Sequence record: MW812339.1
Direction: 5' to 3' (one strand)
Length of the DNA stretch: 64,000 bases
This document shows positions 30,022 through 45,512 of the stretch, piece after piece. The notes under the pieces were generated by a model. It had not been told where the DNA came from, made no database searches, and worked only from the letters and a program-made list of their open reading frames with translations. How positions within the stretch are numbered: the first letter of the stretch is position 1; each line of letters starts with the position of its first letter. Position numbers and translations under genes: made by a program.

Positions 30022-30076
30022 GTTCTTCTTTCCTCATTAAATTGTGCGGTTTTCACATAAGTTAGAGCAGGTTTGT

Positions 30077-30118
30077 AAAAAAGAAGGCACCTCCTCACCC
30101 GCAGGCAAGGAGGGAAAC
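30077..30118 (-). terminator. Intrinsic terminator (imperfect stem)
   Basis: CCTCCT...GGAGG arms with A-run (U tract on minus strand). Confidence 0.5.
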
Positions 30119-30119
30119 C

Positions 30120-30635
30120 TTAGAGCTGGTTCTCTTCGCGGTCGTCAGACAGAATCGCCGCGCAGATGAAACGTGCCAAACGTAAGCGCGCTTCACGACG
30201 TTGTTCGTCAGTTGGGTTCGGGTCAACAGGAGCACATAACTCCAGGTCACCCAACTCTTCCACAAACTTCTCAGCCGCTTCATCGAACGCATTGCGAATT
30301 GTCGCCAGCGCATCCTGGACTTCATCACTCGGGATAGGGCCATCGAGCAGAATCTTCTGCGCATCCAACGGCTCCACCGAGGCGAAGTTCATCTCATTCA
30401 GCATACCGGCGTGCATAGCGTTCGTGGAGATGAGATTGACCAGAACCTTTTCAAAGCGGTTCACATGCTCATCTTCCAGCGGTTGACCTGTCAGCATTTC
30501 GTGATAGCGGGACAGGAGGGTATTAGCATCGCCGCCCTCTTCATCACGAACTCGAAGATCGAAGTCGTGCTGAGGGAGCTGACCGAGTTCGATCATATCC
30601 ATAGTTAACCTCAACGGTGTATAAGGGTCATACAA
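30120..30635 (-). CDS. Hypothetical acidic protein
   Basis: 171-aa ORF. Confidence 0.75.
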   Translation of the reverse strand: MYDPYTPLRLTMDMIELGQLPQHDFDLRVRDEEGGDANTLLSRYHEMLTGQPLEDEHVNRFEKVLVNLISTNAMHAGMLNEMNFASVEPLDAQKILLDGPIPSDEVQDALATIRNAFDEAAEKFVEELGDLELCAPVDPNPTDEQRREARLRLARFICAAILSDDREENQL

Positions 30636-30642
30636 TGGCGAG

Positions 30643-30930
30643 TTACGCGACTGCTGTCAGCGCCGGATTAGATGTAATAACCAACTCACCTTCGATTTCG
30701 CGCATGACACAACCCGTCATTACGTTGTACGTCTTGATGCCATCGCGTGCTTTAGCCTTCGCGATCAGTTTCTCTAGCGTGCGACCGTGGGCACGAGTAA
30801 CTTCTGCAGCGGGATAAACCACCTGCAGCACATGGTTCTCATCGATAACGGCCGTAAACTGTTCCACACCATTGTCTTCGACGCTGTACATCACTTCACG
30901 AGACTTAGAAACTGAACGATTAATTGACAT
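30643..30930 (-). CDS. Hypothetical protein
   Basis: Start moved to MSINRSV, coupled to upstream stop with GGAG RBS. Confidence 0.7.
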   Translation of the reverse strand: MSINRSVSKSREVMYSVEDNGVEQFTAVIDENHVLQVVYPAAEVTRAHGRTLEKLIAKAKARDGIKTYNVMTGCVMREIEGELVITSNPALTAVA

Positions 30931-31741
30931 TATTTTCTCCATTGGGAAGTTTAAGGGTACGTCCATACAGATAACTATCAGGTAACCAGCCGTGTTCTAA
31001 TAACCACATGGCTTCGCAGCCGCCGTCGTACTGATGATAAGTAAAGATTAACTCATCACCTTCCGGCAGGGCGGATTGAATACAACGCATCAGTCGGGCG
31101 TATTGAATTCGCGTCATGTTGCGAACCACGCCTTCTGTGTTCATCCAAGAACCGAGTAACCATCTATCCTGATTATTCGCGACAGCGGTGACCATCACTG
31201 TGCCATCTTCGCCACGACAAGACATCAGTCGGCCGCCGGTAGACACGATGGCATAGATGGAATTCTGTCCGTAGATAAATCGTACCCAATCCAGGAATTC
31301 TTTACGGCTGGGGAACATTGAGGACACGTCATCGCAGAATTCCAAATCCGGGTCCACAGTAGGACGGGGGTTCAGTTTGCGATAGTTAACGGTCTCACAG
31401 CAGAAACCCATTCGTGCATACTCCTCGCCTTCGTTGCGAGTGTAGCACGTCACGTAATTACGTCCGGCAGCTTTCAGCAACGCATCCGCCATCGAACGTA
31501 ACTGGGCATCTAGCGAACGGGCCATGTCGATAATCTCCAACATAAACCCGTGGTCCAGACAGAGCACGGTAGCATCAGGTGCTACGGTGTCACGACTGAA
31601 CACCTCAAAGACACGGTAATAAAGACGACGTTCATCACGCAATACCAGCGGGTCGACGTTATTCAGAAACGACAACGCTTTGCGGTCTTCCAGCCACTCT
31701 CTGTCCAGAATCTTTTCGGTACGTTCTACAACCCTAAGCAT
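30920..31741 (-). CDS. Degenerate tandem GNAT-fold protein
   Basis: 273 aa; 'ADALLKAAG..YVTCYT...EEYARMGF' and 'MWLLEHGW' resemble GNAT C-terminal motif in each half. Confidence 0.5.
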   Translation of the reverse strand: MLRVVERTEKILDREWLEDRKALSFLNNVDPLVLRDERRLYYRVFEVFSRDTVAPDATVLCLDHGFMLEIIDMARSLDAQLRSMADALLKAAGRNYVTCYTRNEGEEYARMGFCCETVNYRKLNPRPTVDPDLEFCDDVSSMFPSRKEFLDWVRFIYGQNSIYAIVSTGGRLMSCRGEDGTVMVTAVANNQDRWLLGSWMNTEGVVRNMTRIQYARLMRCIQSALPEGDELIFTYHQYDGGCEAMWLLEHGWLPDSYLYGRTLKLPNGENNVN

Positions 31742-31750
31742 AATGACTCC

Positions 31751-32554
31751 TTACGCAAGAGTATAGTGGTGAGTCACGACGCGCGTCTCCACACCTTCAA
31801 CTGAAGGAAGTTCGTGTTCGATAGGCACCCCAAGATTAATCACCTTGCCGAGTTTAGCGGCCAGACGAAGAATCATGTCAAAGTGTTTACGGTATTCGTT
31901 AGCGGACGTTATCGGGTCGAACGACTGACAACAGAACTGCTCAGTGATAATCGACTTCGGAAACTCCTTGTACAGTAACAGGGAGAAAGGTTTCTCGCCG
32001 TGCATACCGACGAAGGCCGACACGAACCCGTTAGCCAACTCACCAAGCATTTCCCGTGTGCCTGCATCCTTCAAAGTCGGACGCATTAAATAACACACAG
32101 CTTCGGTTTGCTCGAGCGTTAACTCTTCAAGCGCCTTGACATCGTCCGGAGCCGGATAATCGAACTCACCAACCACCTTCACTTCTACACGCTTAGTGAC
32201 CGCTTCGAAGCCGAGCTTCTGATACAGGGCAGCGTGTTCAGTGTCGTGTGGGAAACAACTGATGTCTAACATCAACACTTCGAGTGCACGGGTCAGACGT
32301 TTCCATTCTGAGAAGAACGGTTCACCCAGGACATGCAGCTCGTAAATGTAAAAGACGTTCCCGGACTTCTGCCCACGGAAATACAACTGGGCTTTTCCGG
32401 AGTTAGAGAAGACTAACCAATGGTCGTCTCCGTCGCCCTCGTAAGGACGTAACTGTTGAATCCGTTCACGCATTGTCCCCAACGTGATCAAACGACCACT
32501 GAACTCCACGGTCATGTCGTTTTTGTCGACACCGTGTAAATTTAATAGAAGCAT
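31751..32554 (-). CDS. Degenerate tandem GNAT-fold protein
   Basis: 267 aa; 'FYIYELHV' and 'HAALYQKLGFE' GNAT-type motifs. Confidence 0.55.
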   Translation of the reverse strand: MLLLNLHGVDKNDMTVEFSGRLITLGTMRERIQQLRPYEGDGDDHWLVFSNSGKAQLYFRGQKSGNVFYIYELHVLGEPFFSEWKRLTRALEVLMLDISCFPHDTEHAALYQKLGFEAVTKRVEVKVVGEFDYPAPDDVKALEELTLEQTEAVCYLMRPTLKDAGTREMLGELANGFVSAFVGMHGEKPFSLLLYKEFPKSIITEQFCCQSFDPITSANEYRKHFDMILRLAAKLGKVINLGVPIEHELPSVEGVETRVVTHHYTLA

Positions 32555-32563
32555 TGATGTACC

Positions 32564-33382
32564 TTATAAGGTGCCGATGAGTTCACCGACCGAGCCACGT
32601 TTGCTGGCGTCTGCCGCCATGTTACGACCGACCTGAATCTCCCGCCAGGTGAAGCCGTAATAGATGTCTCGGGTCAGTAAGGTGTCTGCGTTAGACAGCA
32701 CCACTTTGTTCCCATTAGCAGCTTGTTGAAGTAGAAGTTTCGCCAACTCGCGATGGTCAGCTTGTGAAAATTCCTTTTTGTGGTACTGGGCGTGCTTCGA
32801 AGTATCCGACAGAGGAATGTACGGTGGGTCAGCGTAGATAAGCGCGTTCGGCGGACAGTTCTCTAACACGGTACGGAAGTCGGCACAGATAAGTTCCACA
32901 TTACATTCACTGCAGCGTTTCGCCCATTGGCGGATTTCCTCTTCTGGGAAATACGCGCCATCGGGGTGTGCACCGAAGGGAACGTTAAAGCCGCCAGATT
33001 GGTTGTAACGACACATCCCATTATATCCGTGGCGGGTTAGGTACAGAAACATCGCCGCGCGGTATGGCATAGGCTTACCGGTCGTGGTGTGTTCATTAAA
33101 CAGGTCACGACGTTTCATGTACAGCGCACGGTCGTTACCCTTTTCAAACAACGCTGCGGTTTCAAGAATCAGCTTTTCAGGATTCTCTTTGGCGCAGGTC
33201 AGCAGTTCAATCAAATCGGGGTTAGTGTCGGAAAGAATGTAATTCGGATAGTTGGTGTTCAGGAAGATTGACCCTGCACCCACGAAAGGTTCAACAAAGC
33301 AATCAGCCTCAGGGAACACTTTCAACAATTCCGGTAGCACACGGGTCTTACCGCCCATCCATTTTAAAATCGGTCGTATCAC
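32564..33382 (-). CDS. dam: DNA adenine methyltransferase, Dam/D12 class
   Basis: 272 aa; LKWMGGK, FVEPFVGAGS, FLYL.RHGYNGMCRYN..GGFNVPFG, DPPY. Confidence 0.95.
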   Translation of the reverse strand: MIRPILKWMGGKTRVLPELLKVFPEADCFVEPFVGAGSIFLNTNYPNYILSDTNPDLIELLTCAKENPEKLILETAALFEKGNDRALYMKRRDLFNEHTTTGKPMPYRAAMFLYLTRHGYNGMCRYNQSGGFNVPFGAHPDGAYFPEEEIRQWAKRCSECNVELICADFRTVLENCPPNALIYADPPYIPLSDTSKHAQYHKKEFSQADHRELAKLLLQQAANGNKVVLSNADTLLTRDIYYGFTWREIQVGRNMAADASKRGSVGELIGTL

Positions 33383-33388
33383 CAGACG

Positions 33389-34420
33389 TTATCCTCTGAA
33401 ACCCGACAGGAACGCATTCGCGTCCGTGCGGTGGTCTTCTTTAACGGGTGCGACTGAAGGTTCATCCTTAATCGCGCGCTCAACCAGATTCCCTTTAGCT
33501 CTTTTCCAAGTAACCAGTTCTGGGTTGCGCTTTAGGGTCATGGTACGTAATACCTGCGTGCAACGTAGAATATTGCCGTAGAGGTGATTAGCCGCTTCGT
33601 TACAGGCACCCGTTTCAATGAACACGGTGTCGCTATGGCGAGCAGCATACTCGAACAGTGCACCAATCAAACGACGACCGATACCTTTGCGTTGGTGTTG
33701 GGCTTTAACCACGACACCACTCAGTATCACCACGCCTTTCTCTTGTAGACGAATTTGCGCTACGCCAACGATTTCTTTCCCTTCACGCCACACGACGGTT
33801 TCATTACCTGCAAACGGAATGCGATTTACGACCAAGTCTGCAATCGGTGCTGTGTAGGTATAATGTCCCCGCACATCCAATTCCAGTTCTTCGTAAACCC
33901 CCACACCGACTAACGAACGCACGTCTTCCTTATCAGTCTTCGACAGTTCATGCCACGCATCCCCCGAGATAGACTTAATCTCCGTAGCGGTAATCACACC
34001 ATCAAACAAACGAGAAGGTGCCGTCCAGACAAAATCAGAAAGCACGAAGCCGCGTTGTAGCAACTTCTCCTCTGTATCCGGTGTCGGTGCAGGACATGAC
34101 ATGTATTCAAAGCCGGTGTGGTCGAGAACCAAAGCCATACCGACGGTGTCTAACGCGTTCGGAACGAACTCTTCAAAATAGTGGCAGGATAACGTAGGGT
34201 CACCGTGTTGATAAGTGGCCACTAAATAACCTTCCCATTTGGCTTGCAGTCCGTAGATAACGTAAACTGAATATTGCTCGTCCTTGAGAAAACCCATCAA
34301 GCGCTTAGCACGTGGGGTAGAGATACCGACCTGTTCAGCGAACTGAGCGGTGCGGATATCAGCGCGAAATAACCTGCCCACTGTTTTCATTGTAATACCC
34401 TCAAAAGGTGTTGCTGTCAC
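33389..34420 (-). CDS. Tandem GNAT acetyltransferase
   Basis: 343 aa; C-terminal domain has acetyl-CoA motif 'VVVKAQHQRKGIGRRLI' and 'NEAANHLY'; N-terminal domain degenerate ('KLLQRGF'). Confidence 0.8.
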   Translation of the reverse strand: MTATPFEGITMKTVGRLFRADIRTAQFAEQVGISTPRAKRLMGFLKDEQYSVYVIYGLQAKWEGYLVATYQHGDPTLSCHYFEEFVPNALDTVGMALVLDHTGFEYMSCPAPTPDTEEKLLQRGFVLSDFVWTAPSRLFDGVITATEIKSISGDAWHELSKTDKEDVRSLVGVGVYEELELDVRGHYTYTAPIADLVVNRIPFAGNETVVWREGKEIVGVAQIRLQEKGVVILSGVVVKAQHQRKGIGRRLIGALFEYAARHSDTVFIETGACNEAANHLYGNILRCTQVLRTMTLKRNPELVTWKRAKGNLVERAIKDEPSVAPVKEDHRTDANAFLSGFRG

Positions 34421-34447
34421 ATCATGAGCATAAATTGTAAAAAGGCA

Positions 34448-34476
34448 AAAAAAGTAAGGGGGCGAAAAGCCCCCTT
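34448..34476 (-). terminator. Intrinsic terminator
   Basis: AAGGGGGC/GCCCCCTT stem, U tract on minus strand. Confidence 0.8.
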
Positions 34477-34489
34477 ATACACATCACGA

Positions 34490-35182: not shown

Positions 35183-35566
35183 TTAATATTCCGCGTCTTC
35201 CGGAAACTCGCGTGCATACGCCAGTTTGTCATTTTCGACACGGTTAAGATGTGTAGGTAATGAGATGCAGTTGTTGCAAATGCACAACGCTTCGTCGCCT
35301 TGTTGGTGATCAAAGTCGTACCATTTCCACTCCGTGGTGTCACGTTGCGGGAAGGCACCTTTACAGTCACTGCAAATAACTTCAGTGCCTGCGATTTCAG
35401 CTTGCAGTTTTTCCCAGCAGGAAACGCACATGTAGTACGTCTCACGGCCTAGGAGGTCGCACTCCGCTGTATAGCGTGGTGCCACTTCACCGACTTTCAA
35501 ATGTTTGCAACGGTCGTCATCTTCTTTAATAACGCGTTTGGTGATGCCATTAACAAACCAATTCAT
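35183..35566 (-). CDS. Cys-rich (zinc-finger-like) protein
   Basis: 127 aa; CKH, CVSC, CSDC, CICNNC. Confidence 0.7.
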   Translation of the reverse strand: MNWFVNGITKRVIKEDDDRCKHLKVGEVAPRYTAECDLLGRETYYMCVSCWEKLQAEIAGTEVICSDCKGAFPQRDTTEWKWYDFDHQQGDEALCICNNCISLPTHLNRVENDKLAYAREFPEDAEY

Positions 35567-37171: not shown

Positions 37172-37230
37172 GATAATTCCCCAAGTGATTGATAGAGACG
37201 GTTGTTCACACTATAGCCACTTGACGTAAA

Positions 37231-38811: not shown

Positions 38812-39276
38812 TTAAAGCTCCTTCACCATGTCGTGATATTCGGTTCGAAAACCGAAGCGTTCGTAAAACGCAAGTGCCCTGTCGTTGTTCCCCAGGACGG
38901 TAAGCTGCATCCATGCACAGCCCTTCGACTTGCCGTAAGTCTCTACGGCCGAAATCAGTTCTTTGCCCACCCCTTGAGAGCGGACGTCTTCCTCAACGAA
39001 GAAGTTATATACCCAGAGGAAGCGCTGACCCTTTTTGGTATAGCCAAAGGTAATGAAGCCCACAGCCACGCCGCGGTCATCAATGGCACAAGCACACATC
39101 GTCCCTTCATTCCAGATTTCCTCTAACTTCGAAATGTTCGCAAAACCTTCACGACCATTCAGATCCGCCAGTTTGGATTTCTGGTCATCGTAAAGTTTGT
39201 TGTGTAGGGCCAATAAGTCGGTGTAGTATTTCTTACCGTAGGGTGAGTCGGGTTTCGTTACAAAGACAATTTTCAT
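38812..39276 (-). CDS. GNAT acetyltransferase
   Basis: 154 aa; 'FFVEEDVRSQGVGKELI', 'NDRALAFYERFGF'. Confidence 0.9.
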   Translation of the reverse strand: MKIVFVTKPDSPYGKKYYTDLLALHNKLYDDQKSKLADLNGREGFANISKLEEIWNEGTMCACAIDDRGVAVGFITFGYTKKGQRFLWVYNFFVEEDVRSQGVGKELISAVETYGKSKGCAWMQLTVLGNNDRALAFYERFGFRTEYHDMVKEL

Positions 39277-39277
39277 G

Positions 39278-40408
39278 TCAGTGTACCTCCGCCAACGACT
39301 GCTTTATCCACTCCATCAACCCTTCGGCCACACGCACCAGTGCGGTGGTAAAAGCATCTTCCATCGCCAGCGCGTTACGGTAGCGCTGAGTCACCACGCG
39401 AAGCTCTTTCCCTTCCAGGTCTTTTAATTCACCCTTCATGGTTTCGACTTCAGCATAGATCCCCGTATAACCGAATACCCGGCTTTTCGTTCCCCGGTCA
39501 CGGATGGATTTGATTAACGCGTCAACAGCTTCAATGGCTTTACCGCACTGATGCATGTCCAACGATTTAATCGTCTCACCGTATTGACCTTCGCGGGCGA
39601 TAGCCCAACCCACCTTACCACTGTGGTGCGTAACCACAATGATATTTCCTGGGATAGGGTACGCTTCAATTTTCTTGAAGGGGTCAACAATCCCCATCAG
39701 ACCCGCCGCACGTTTAACTGCCCAGCTGGTCGAGCGACCAATCTGCTTCATGCCAGGACCGTCGGTGAATTGACTCTTCTTCAGCGCGGTACGAGTATAA
39801 ACCGTATACTTCTGCACCACACCTTCATAAGCTTGTGTTTGCTTAGAGAACGTCAGGCAGGCCTCGAAGTCAACCTTATCCTCGTAACAAACTTTAGACG
39901 TCCAGCTACTAGTGTGTACGTCTACCGCGTCCATTGTCTTGTTATCATCTAACAGCGACATACGCTTTTTCAGTTTGTCGAGTTTACGTTCCATGAATGC
40001 AGCTTTCGAAGTTGCATCCTTTAATCGGTCAGCCTGTTCTTTGGCTAACTCTTCTGCGAAGTCGTAGAAACGACCAGCCAACTTCTTAGACAGATTAACA
40101 GTTCCACGCCCTGCCGCAGCAGCGCCTTTACCTGCCAATTTACCGACACCTTTCACGCCTTTCGCAACCAAACGACCCGCGGCGCGATGTACGCCAGCGG
40201 TTGGATCGGTATCAGTCATGAACTGTGCCTGCTCCATCATTTCCCGCGATTCGGTCGCAACCAACAGCCCATCGTCGTCAGTTAAACCCCAACGTTGACT
40301 GATGGCGCAAACCGCAGGAAAGTCGGGCTTGACCCCAAGGGCCTCTAATGCGACTAGTCTGTCGTAATCGTCGCACAAGATTTCAAAATCAAGATCAAGC
40401 GTCGACAT
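39278..40408 (-). CDS. Inner head/virion protein with propeptide (processed-head-protein family)
   Basis: Start moved to MSTLDLD; acidic leader with A-x-E sites (VALE, VATE); paralog of 40419..41408. Confidence 0.65.
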   Translation of the reverse strand: MSTLDLDFEILCDDYDRLVALEALGVKPDFPAVCAISQRWGLTDDDGLLVATESREMMEQAQFMTDTDPTAGVHRAAGRLVAKGVKGVGKLAGKGAAAAGRGTVNLSKKLAGRFYDFAEELAKEQADRLKDATSKAAFMERKLDKLKKRMSLLDDNKTMDAVDVHTSSWTSKVCYEDKVDFEACLTFSKQTQAYEGVVQKYTVYTRTALKKSQFTDGPGMKQIGRSTSWAVKRAAGLMGIVDPFKKIEAYPIPGNIIVVTHHSGKVGWAIAREGQYGETIKSLDMHQCGKAIEAVDALIKSIRDRGTKSRVFGYTGIYAEVETMKGELKDLEGKELRVVTQRYRNALAMEDAFTTALVRVAEGLMEWIKQSLAEVH

Positions 40409-40418
40409 CTGTGACTCC

Positions 40419-41408
40419 TTAACTGTTGGCTTTAAGTGAGGCACCAACCCAGTTGATTAAACCATCAGCAACGCGAGCGAGTGCGGTAGTAAACGCGTCT
40501 TCGAGCTGAACGGCATTCTTGAATCGTCTGGTGGCAACTCGCAATTCGTCCCCGCCCATCTTCTTCATTTCGCCTTTCATTTTCTCAAGCTCAGTGTATA
40601 TACCGCTGTAGCCCAAGGCACCGTTCTTGGCCGCACGCTTTTCCAGACTCTTAATGATAGTCCGAACTGCTTTGAGGGCTTGGGTGCACTGTGCTTTGTT
40701 GAGAGAAACGATTTCGCTCTTATAGTCACCGCCATGCGCGACTGCGAATTCGACTTTGGCTTTATCGCCTTCACCGCGAGTAACAACGATAACATTACCG
40801 GCCAGTGGTCTGGCTTCAACGTCGTCCTCACCGAAGCGACCCAGAATACCCGAGGCACGGTGAATCGCCGCGTTAGAACTGTAGCTGATTTTCTTCAGCT
40901 CACCGTTTTCCATCTTGCGACGGTCAACAACAGGCGATGTTACGATTTGTCGTGTAACGACAGTGTACTGTTTCACCACCGCATCGATTGCATCGGCGCT
41001 ATTTGCCAGTTTTAAACACTGCGGCAAATCAGGGACGTCTTCAAAACAGACCTTAGACGTCCAACTACCCGATTTGGCTTCTTTAGCGTCGAGCGTAGCC
41101 TGTTTTGCCAACCAGCTTTCCATCTGGTCACAATGCTTTTCTAGCTGGGCGGTTTCATCACTGAGTTTCTTCAACGCCTCACCATAGCGGGTGCCGAAGT
41201 AACCAGCCAGGTCGTTATACATCTGGCTCAGCAAAGAGGAGGTGGTGCGGCTTTTGTCGCGCGCTTCGTGGGCCACACCAACATCTAAACACCAACGCTT
41301 TCGGATGGCTTGAATGGCTGGGTTGGTAATGGGCGCACCCATTGACTCCAACGCAACCAAACGATCCATATCCTCTTCGAGGGTGATGTAATCTAATTCA
41401 AGAGACAT
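40419..41408 (-). CDS. Inner head/virion protein with propeptide
   Basis: 329 aa; VALES, VAHE; shares TSSWTSKVC/SGSWTSKVC and EDAFTTAL.RVA.GL..W with neighbour. Confidence 0.65.
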   Translation of the reverse strand: MSLELDYITLEEDMDRLVALESMGAPITNPAIQAIRKRWCLDVGVAHEARDKSRTTSSLLSQMYNDLAGYFGTRYGEALKKLSDETAQLEKHCDQMESWLAKQATLDAKEAKSGSWTSKVCFEDVPDLPQCLKLANSADAIDAVVKQYTVVTRQIVTSPVVDRRKMENGELKKISYSSNAAIHRASGILGRFGEDDVEARPLAGNVIVVTRGEGDKAKVEFAVAHGGDYKSEIVSLNKAQCTQALKAVRTIIKSLEKRAAKNGALGYSGIYTELEKMKGEMKKMGGDELRVATRRFKNAVQLEDAFTTALARVADGLINWVGASLKANS

Positions 41409-45029: not shown

Positions 45030-45512
45030 CTAGATTACCTTACCTTCTGCCATCGAGAGAAAAATAGGAACGTTATCCACAAAGGTAGTTAAATCTATTT
45101 CTTCCGATGGCGCGTGTGACGGCACTAAAGTGTGATTCGTCATACGAAAATACCGTTGGTTGTCATTTGCAATGAACCAACGGTCAATCTGGAAGCCGTT
45201 TTGATGGAAGAAACAGATAGCTGCTACGTTTGAAGGATGAACACGACACTGCACGTGTTTGCGTTCAGACTGAGTGAGCAAGTAGCGCAGCATGTACTTG
45301 GCCACACCTCCACGTCGCGAATCCTTTTGCACGACCATGTAAATCAGATTGCCGGGCTCCCACACCATCACGCCGCGAGCAATGTCATCTTCTACCGCCA
45401 AGGTCACTTTAACCGGGACGTCACGGATACTGTTTAAATCCTTAATCCATGCCGCCAGTCCTGGGTAGGTGGCTTCTGATATTTTGTCTACTGATACGTT
45501 GATGATGAGCAT
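45030..45512 (-). CDS. GNAT acetyltransferase
   Basis: 160 aa; 'VVQKDSRRGGVAKYML', 'NVAAICFFHQNGF'. Confidence 0.85.
   Translation of the reverse strand: MLIINVSVDKISEATYPGLAAWIKDLNSIRDVPVKVTLAVEDDIARGVMVWEPGNLIYMVVQKDSRRGGVAKYMLRYLLTQSERKHVQCRVHPSNVAAICFFHQNGFQIDRWFIANDNQRYFRMTNHTLVPSHAPSEEIDLTTFVDNVPIFLSMAEGKVI

Follow-up and report, generated by a model that had tools for sequence, protein, structure and literature searches.

A strongly diverged array of predicted tandem-GNAT proteins around an orphan Dam methylase gene in the jumbo phage pEa_SNUABM_29

The stretch of DNA considered here, referred to as the window, comprises 64,000 nucleotides (nt) of the record of Erwinia phage pEa_SNUABM_29 (MW812339, genus Seoulvirus, 248.8 kb), and positions in the window coincide with those of the record. 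The phage is an SPN3US-like jumbo phage whose host is the fire-blight bacterium Erwinia amylovora. On the minus strand of the window lies a block in which a gene for a Dam-type DNA methyltransferase is embedded among three genes for proteins of 333, 267 and 273 amino acids (aa), all genes of the block carrying the label 'hypothetical protein' in GenBank. The three flanking proteins are predicted to contain a duplicated GCN5-related N-acetyltransferase (GNAT) fold, and together they represent a new, strongly diverged form of the known tandem-GNAT proteins in a phage gene array that is evolutionarily dynamic. It is rather probable that the members of this array form a birth-and-death family of tandem-GNAT proteins, each acting independently, and comprise one probable acetyltransferase and two derivatives that lack the cofactor motif, with an orphan Dam inserted among them.

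The gene block and its Dam methylase

The genes and signals of the block are collected in Table 1. As predicted from the DNA, the six genes would form one transcription unit between the two terminator-like hairpins, within which 6 nt separate the first gene from dam, 9 nt separate dam from the 267-aa gene, and 9 nt separate the latter from the 273-aa gene. A first-pass annotation, made from the letters of the window, had reported the order GNAT-dam-267-273 with gaps of 6-9 bp following a terminator, which is borne out, together with a first protein of 343 aa and an end of the block at 30920, both of which require amendment. The unit runs on through the 95-aa and 160-aa genes, and the first protein most likely begins at the ATG that gives 333 aa, the upstream GTG being the less likely start, because the GenBank annotation agrees, the orthologues share this start and the ATG is preceded by a GAGGG ribosome-binding site. 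The upstream GTG falls within the promoter-like element.

Table 1. Genes and predicted signals of the block in pEa_SNUABM_29
Feature	Position	Strand	Remarks
333-aa tandem-GNAT protein (predicted), orthologue of SPN3US gp104	33389..34390	-	Frame open up to GTG 34420 (343 aa)
Orphan Dam, D12-class N6-adenine DNA methyltransferase, 272 aa	32564..33382	-	GTG start
267-aa cryptic tandem-GNAT-fold protein (predicted), orthologue of SPN3US gp106	31751..32554	-	phrog_9941
273-aa cryptic tandem-GNAT-fold protein (predicted), orthologue of SPN3US gp107	30920..31741	-	phrog_13677
Terminator-like hairpin behind the upstream 221-aa gene; the unit begins here	34455..34477	-	From a consensus scan; stem of 9 bp with 6 GC pairs, T-run
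Promoter-like element TTTACA-N14-TGTGA, right after the hairpin	34417..34441	-	Weak, without independent support
95-aa gene, same transcription unit	30643..30930	-	GenBank annotation; 11-nt overlap with the 273-aa gene
160-aa gene, last in the unit	30120..30602	-	GenBank annotation
Terminator-like hairpin closing the six-gene unit	30090..30113	-	10-bp stem, 6 GC pairs, T-run

Judged by its sequence, the methylase is a complete and orthodox Dam of the E. coli Dam/DpnM type. It belongs to PF02086 (E 1e-55, 189.8 bits against a cutoff of 22) and to TIGR00571 (253.4 bits against a curated cutoff of 114.85), and it matches E. coli Dam (2G1P) with 185 bits, the FxGxG, DPPY and YNGxCRYN...NVPFG segments being aligned, while the match to T4 Dam (1YFJ) reaches only 44 bits. 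The enzyme would be expected to methylate GATC. A Pfam scan of ten neighbouring genes revealed no nuclease domain beside dam, in line with the earlier remark that no restriction nuclease is adjacent, and no paper on DNA modification in this phage group was found in the literature.

Despite the GATC-type Dam, GATC is under-represented in the window, with 94 sites against approximately 301 expected from trinucleotide frequencies (ratio 0.31). Among the other palindromic tetranucleotides, the ratio of observed to expected counts is 0.42 for CTAG, 0.66 for AATT and 0.8-1.05 for most of the remainder. Such strong depletion beside a phage-encoded GATC Dam constitutes a separate small puzzle.

Predicted folds and cofactor motifs of the flanking proteins

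The 333-aa protein, which is also classified as phrog_8663, matches the Pfam family Acetyltransf_1 with E 6e-14 over residues 203-283 of its 343-aa form. When the beta4-alpha3 loops were mapped on the family alignments, the acetyl-coenzyme A (CoA) loop Q/RxxGxG was located only in the C-lobe of this protein (QRKGIG), that is, in one of the six lobes of the three proteins, as the first-pass annotation had observed. In the orthologues of Machinavirus and Wellingtonvirus, arginine replaces the first glycine of the loop (Q/x-x-x-R-x-G). Residues 1-190 of the Atlas model superpose on bacterial GNAT clusters of 300-330 aa with a template modelling (TM) score of 0.79, and the BFVD model of the orthologue from phage Kwan aligns with the 267-aa tandem model over 278 columns; these two models suggest a tandem GNAT with a degenerate N-lobe and a canonical C-lobe. 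Research on characterized tandem GNATs has shown that the C-terminal lobe alone is catalytic (PMC10936415), and the 333-aa protein is consistent with this rule at the motif level, both its Pfam GNAT domain and its motif A (Q/R-x-x-G-x-G/A) being situated in the C-lobe; the 267-aa and 273-aa proteins do not show this pattern in their motifs. The protein is probably an active acetyl-CoA-dependent N-acetyltransferase with the architecture of MshD and VipF.

For the 267-aa and 273-aa proteins, a Pfam scan returned nothing, and both corresponding PHROGs are of unknown function. AF2/AlphaFold models, built from shallow alignments of 13 sequences of relatives with identities down to 17-23%, reached a predicted local distance difference test (pLDDT) score of 88.7 for the 267-aa protein and 86.8 for the 273-aa protein, and in both models the GNAT order of elements (beta1-alpha1-alpha2-beta2-beta3-beta4-alpha3-beta5-alpha4-beta6) occurs twice. 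The best Foldseek matches of both models in the PDB are the tandem GNATs VipF, MAB_4324, the clavulanic-acid protein CBG and MshD, with E values from 1e-9 to 7e-11. The alignments are full-length, covering 243 of the 267 residues against 3tt2, 230-239 residues against VipF, and 224 of the 273 residues against MshD. Although the predictions derive from shallow alignments, they are backed by a second independent model, the BFVD model of the 267-aa protein agreeing with the one made here at a TM score of 0.93, and by the consistency of the fold searches. Both proteins are thus modelled as full-length tandem-GNAT folds, detectable by structure prediction only. The short motifs from which two GNAT halves per flanking protein had initially been guessed (KLLQRGF, QRKGIG, ALYQKLGF, EYARMGF and LLEHGW) are all found in the sequence, and the structure prediction that had been proposed as a check on the 267-aa and 273-aa proteins returned GNAT folds and not other folds.

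Motif A was not found in either lobe of the 267 and 273 families across all 13 aligned members. In the 267 family, F81-x-x-W84-K85 is conserved exactly where the N-lobe motif A would be located, a 10-residue loop replaces helix alpha4 in the C-lobe, and the polar residues R122, K237 and H263 are invariant, with E205 nearly so; in the 273 family, the invariant polar residues are E6, R43, D63, Y120 and Y257. These invariant residues indicate that both motif-less families are under functional constraint, and both proteins probably make no canonical use of acyl-CoA.

The 267 family is restricted to this phage clade, as an HMMER profile search of 1.84 billion representatives retrieved 11 proteins, all with E <=1e-23, and within that search neither distant relatives outside the clade nor a twilight-zone tail appeared. 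Separately, several proteins of approximately 214 aa from Erwinia jumbo phages (A0A1B2IBG0, A0A1B2IE03, A0A8E7G123 and A0A1B2IDM8; 213-215 aa) match the 267-aa model when their BFVD models are compared by Foldseek (E 1e-5 to 1e-7, TM score by target 0.34-0.45); the neighbour families tested as their source gave profile scores at background only.

The absence of the loop raises the alternative that the 267-aa protein, the 273-aa protein or both are active transferases with a non-canonical donor, such as aminoacyl-tRNA as used by Fem enzymes, L/F-transferase and aaPGS, or another acyl carrier, acting on an envelope, protein or nucleic-acid target. Double-GNAT enzymes without a CoA loop do exist, and several of them appear among the lower-ranked Foldseek matches (FemX 7z6a with E 5e-7, A-PGS 4v35, Sbb17 9wqx and FemA 1lrz); the retention of invariant polar residues at 17-25% identity in each family and the F-x-x-W-K segment at the site of the N-lobe motif A are also consistent with such activity. 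The FemX match, however, is at the level of the fold (TM score 0.37) and is weaker than those of acyl-CoA tandem GNATs, which match better than Fem-type proteins overall (E 1e-10 versus 1e-7, TM score 0.5 versus 0.3-0.4). Moreover, no Pfam signal of Fem, aaPGS or L/F-transferase was detected at E up to 1, and each of the two proteins falls approximately 100 residues short of a Fem enzyme in length and has no coiled-coil arm of the Fem kind. This alternative is rather unlikely. A related proposal, which appears quite unlikely, is that the two proteins, far from being dead copies, constitute a new class of phage effectors on a tandem-GNAT scaffold, either enzymes that do not use acyl-CoA or high-affinity decoys or sensors of a host defence or metabolic ligand; in SPN3US-like phages, they might cooperate with Dam in the phage nucleus, with phage DNA or proteins bound to DNA as the target.

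Array composition and paralogy across relatives

The order GNAT-Dam-267-273 is common to Seoulvirus, Machinavirus, Wellingtonvirus and two metagenomic contigs, and the composition of the array varies between lineages (Table 2). In the sister genus Derbicusvirus, the array occupies the same place, directly after the thymidylate kinase gene (tmk), with no dam inside, and no match to the D12 methylase family (PF02086) was found anywhere in the genome of Derbicus. The third Derbicus member, gp104, has no Pfam family and is connected to the 267 family by a weak profile link. In the metagenomic contig L023, the 267-type gene is followed by small downstream genes with nothing in between.

Table 2. 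Composition of the array across relatives
Lineage	343 family	dam	267 family	273 type
Seoulvirus (pEa_SNUABM_29, SPN3US, SPAsTU)	Present	Present	Present	Present
Erskinevirus (Asesino)	None in the genome	Full-length gene present	Present	Present
Machinavirus (Caitlin, ChrisDB)	Present	Present	Present	Present, with extra copy
Wellingtonvirus	Present	Present	Present	Fourth gene, of the subfamily of the Caitlin extra copy
Logan contig L023 (metagenomic)	Present	Present	Present	Absent
Derbicusvirus (Derbicus, CR5, Phobos)	Two members with canonical motifs (gp102, gp103)	Not in the array	gp104	Not identified

Two annotation matters concern this comparison. The DNA methyltransferase annotated in Asesino (NC_031107) as gp121 (start L005:4259) appears to be truncated at its 5' end, and an in-frame ATG at L005:4173 (gene L005:4173-4990) restores the conserved N-terminus MIKPILKWMGGK and the full length. 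In the Salmonella phages SPFM1, 5, 7, 9, 10, 12, 14 and 15 (LR5359xx), orthologues of the block occur only as short fragmented matches and the called proteins match in numerous small pieces, a pattern suggestive of assemblies rich in frameshifts rather than of true gene loss.

The fourth gene of Wellingtonvirus (L008:5796-6533, L009:5842-6579) was not detected by the 273-family profile, but it is related at 95% hhalign probability to the extra gene of Caitlin (L016:5610-6371), itself a relative of the 273 family. The position of the 273-type gene is thus occupied by sub-paralogues that differ from genus to genus. In Caitlin, a tandem duplication of recent date is directly visible.

These patterns bear on the proposal of the first-pass annotation, namely a heteromeric acyltransferase in which the 333-aa protein is catalytic and the 267-aa and 273-aa proteins serve as scaffold or substrate-binding subunits, co-working with Dam in a single pathway of DNA or nucleotide modification, for which a Mom-like further modification of adenine would be one example, or of anti-defence acetylation. 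The tight gene spacing within one unit, the association of dam with the array across four genera and two metagenomic contigs, the single canonical cofactor loop among six lobes, and the precedent of GNAT-superfamily enzymes, for example Mom, that acylate adenine in phage DNA (PMC7824862) are all compatible with it. The linkage in four genera is inherited, because the genomes are collinear over long distances, and is not independent evidence in either direction. Against the proposal, the Derbicus-group array lacks dam and the Derbicus genome contains none, so that the unlinking of dam in close relatives, which that annotation had itself named as a refutation, is encountered in Derbicusvirus. 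Asesino retains dam-267-273 with no 343-family gene in its genome, contig L023 has no 273-type gene, and Caitlin and ChrisDB carry an extra 273-type copy. The two canonical-motif members of Derbicus show that the pattern of a single catalytic subunit is not ancestral, and the Pfam scan returned generic GNAT families only. Every component of the array is individually dispensable in some lineage, which argues against an obligate heteromer as well as against obligate coupling with Dam, and the proposal accordingly appears very doubtful.

The kinship of the three flanking proteins is not apparent at the level of simple sequence comparison, as pairwise BLASTP among them showed no similarity and hmmsearch with the family profiles on the open reading frames of the neighbourhood left the families unlinked, the Caitlin duplicate excepted. 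Direct hhalign comparisons between the families are weak (probability 6-18%), although they fall on topologically equivalent segments and lie above the controls, which consisted of 28 reversed alignments (scores <=21.6) and 30 comparisons of unrelated neighbour families (<=19.1). A bridge is provided by Derbicus: the 343 family is linked to gp102 at 98.8% and to gp103 at 99.0%, gp102 to gp104 at 70% (E 4e-5, 163 columns), and gp104 in turn reaches the 267 family with 45% (E 2e-4, over 173 collinear columns). The 267 and 273 families are connected with a score of 31, and the 273 family is connected to the Caitlin extra gene at 93%. At the structural level, the viral protein that, orthologues apart, matches the 267-aa model best is the 343-family member of Kwan (E 3e-14, TM score 0.71, root-mean-square deviation 3.9 Å), above the tandem GNATs of the PDB (TM score <=0.52), and the secondary-structure elements of the modelled N-lobes of the 267-aa and 273-aa proteins coincide almost residue by residue. 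The three flanking proteins are therefore very probably paralogues, as the first-pass annotation had supposed, and the Kwan structural match and the Derbicus-bridged network above controls indicate that the array arose through successive rounds of tandem duplication followed by divergence. Neither the 221-aa gene upstream, the 216-aa gene downstream nor Wellington gp128-130 could be added to the array, as all their profile scores were at background; these comparisons also served as negative controls.

The opposite view, that the three proteins are independently acquired or convergent double-GNAT neighbours, would account for the empty BLASTP, unlinked hmmsearch and weak direct hhalign results, but is scarcely credible in light of the Derbicus bridge with its calibrated controls, the fact that the closest viral structure to the 267-aa model belongs to the family of a neighbouring gene, the coinciding N-lobes, the visible duplication in Caitlin, and the small share of tandem GNATs among GNATs (PMC10936415), which makes three adjacent ones by chance unlikely.

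Proposed origin of the array and relation to known systems

The birth-and-death reading is built on the observed gene order, folds, motif status, paralogy network and pattern of presence and absence across lineages. According to this reading, tandem duplication would have built a double-GNAT family inside a transcription unit that is conserved among SPN3US-like jumbo phages. The orphan GATC-type Dam would have become inserted between the first and second members, having entered in the SPN3US-type lineage or, alternatively, having been lost from the Derbicus lineage. The 333-aa protein would most likely acetylate a host or phage protein or a small amine in an acetyl-CoA-dependent manner. The 267-aa and 273-aa proteins would be extremely diverged paralogues that have kept the double-GNAT scaffold and lost motif A in both lobes, acting as ligand-binding, target-binding or decoy pseudoenzymes, or as enzymes with a non-canonical donor. 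Members of the array would work independently of each other and of Dam, which would methylate GATC on its own, like other orphan Dams of phages.

The way in which members have been gained, lost and duplicated, together with the occurrence of GNAT domains across the genome, fits an accessory host-interaction family. Four Pfam-detectable GNAT domains are present in the phage record, at 33.6, 39.0, 45.3 and 204.9 kb. A role in host takeover or counter-defence may be envisaged, and for the GNATs of jumbo phages a modification of host proteins like that by phiKMV Rac has been proposed (PMC7824862). Elsewhere in the window, a single-domain GNAT of 154 aa (Pfam E 2e-17) adjoins two genes whose matches to phiKZ-like internal head proteins are sub-threshold (38812-39276, 39278-40408 and 40419-41408, minus strand; also 45192-45380).

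Several points weigh against the birth-and-death reading. All sampled members of Seoulvirus, Erskinevirus, Machinavirus and Wellingtonvirus have dam linked to the array, and a facultative functional link between the two may exist within this four-genus lineage. The connection of the 273 family to the other members consists of the fold and a weak profile score, and the N-lobe fold of the 333-aa protein derives from the Atlas model (pLDDT 0.68) and the BFVD model of the Kwan orthologue. In the 267 family, E205 (on beta4), K237 (before beta5), H263 (on the last strand) and R122 could form a real active site, and the loss of motif A is no proof that CoA binding has been lost, because the loop binds through backbone amides. 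In the literature, no biochemical, expression or proteomic data were found for SPN3US gp104-107, and the publications examined made no mention of SPN3US gp103-108.

The analysis provides a fold and an evolutionary origin for phrog_9941 and phrog_13677 (SPN3US gp106 and gp107), which are conserved in SPN3US-like, Erskine-, Machina- and Wellington-type jumbo phages, and describes a maintained, rapidly diversifying tandem-GNAT array, a pattern typical of host-interaction or counter-defence genes. It also sets Dam apart from the array, correcting an attractive but unsupported reading of the locus as a pathway. Because amber-mutant genetics works in SPN3US, the predictions are directly testable.

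The 95-aa gene, whose position is conserved in relatives, has no Pfam match and no known family; the 160-aa gene likewise belongs to no known family, its Pfam scan yielding just a sub-threshold HAAS match. Within a few bases after each terminator-like hairpin, an element of the form TTTACR-N14-16-TGTGA is present (30053-30079, 34417-34441 and 37206-37230, all on the minus strand), and hairpin and element may form a terminator-promoter cassette. Three such sites were found in the window against 0.29 expected, a circular comparison in that the pattern was derived from the same three sites; as the scan recovers only its source sites, the element was rejected as a supported promoter motif. Upstream of the block, between a helix-turn-helix regulator and the 221-aa gene, a 127-aa protein (35183-35566, minus strand) contains several CxxC pairs that suggest a zinc-ribbon-like structure, its Pfam matches being sub-threshold only.

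Among known systems, the closest counterparts of the array proteins in architecture are the tandem GNATs MshD (1OZP), VipF (6WQB/7WX5-7), CBG (2WPW), GlmA (5KF1) and MAB_4324 (7Q3A), with which they share 7-13% sequence identity. The layout of MshD and VipF, a degenerate N-lobe followed by a canonical C-lobe, is likewise predicted for the 333-aa protein. Both lobes of MshD and VipF bind acetyl-CoA, whereas a Q/RxxGxG/A loop is missing from both lobes of the 267-aa and 273-aa proteins, and the modelled 267-aa C-lobe further differs from known tandem GNATs in its loop at the place of helix alpha4. True relatives of the array proteins are SPN3US gp104, the proteins of Cronobacter phage CR5 named 'GCN5-related N-acetyltransferase 1 and 2' and Derbicus gp102-gp104. 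The Derbicus and SPN3US groups share the position after thymidylate kinase and three genes of approximately 270-330 aa; the former has two canonical-motif members and no dam, whereas the latter has one such member, with dam between members one and two. In its D12 class, FxGxG and DPPY motifs and lack of a cognate nuclease, the methylase resembles the orphan Dams E. coli Dam (2G1P), DpnM (2DPM) and T4 Dam (1YFJ), but unlike them it is encoded within an array of GNAT paralogues in a GATC-depleted genome (0.31). Among phage proteins of the GNAT superfamily, phiKMV Rac (host takeover) and Mu Mom (DNA protection) offer plausible functional analogies (PMC7824862); no sequence similarity specific to Rac or Mom was found in the array proteins, nothing in the analysis pointed to RNAP or DNA as their substrate, and Rac and Mom are single-domain proteins, unlike the tandem-GNAT members of the array described here.

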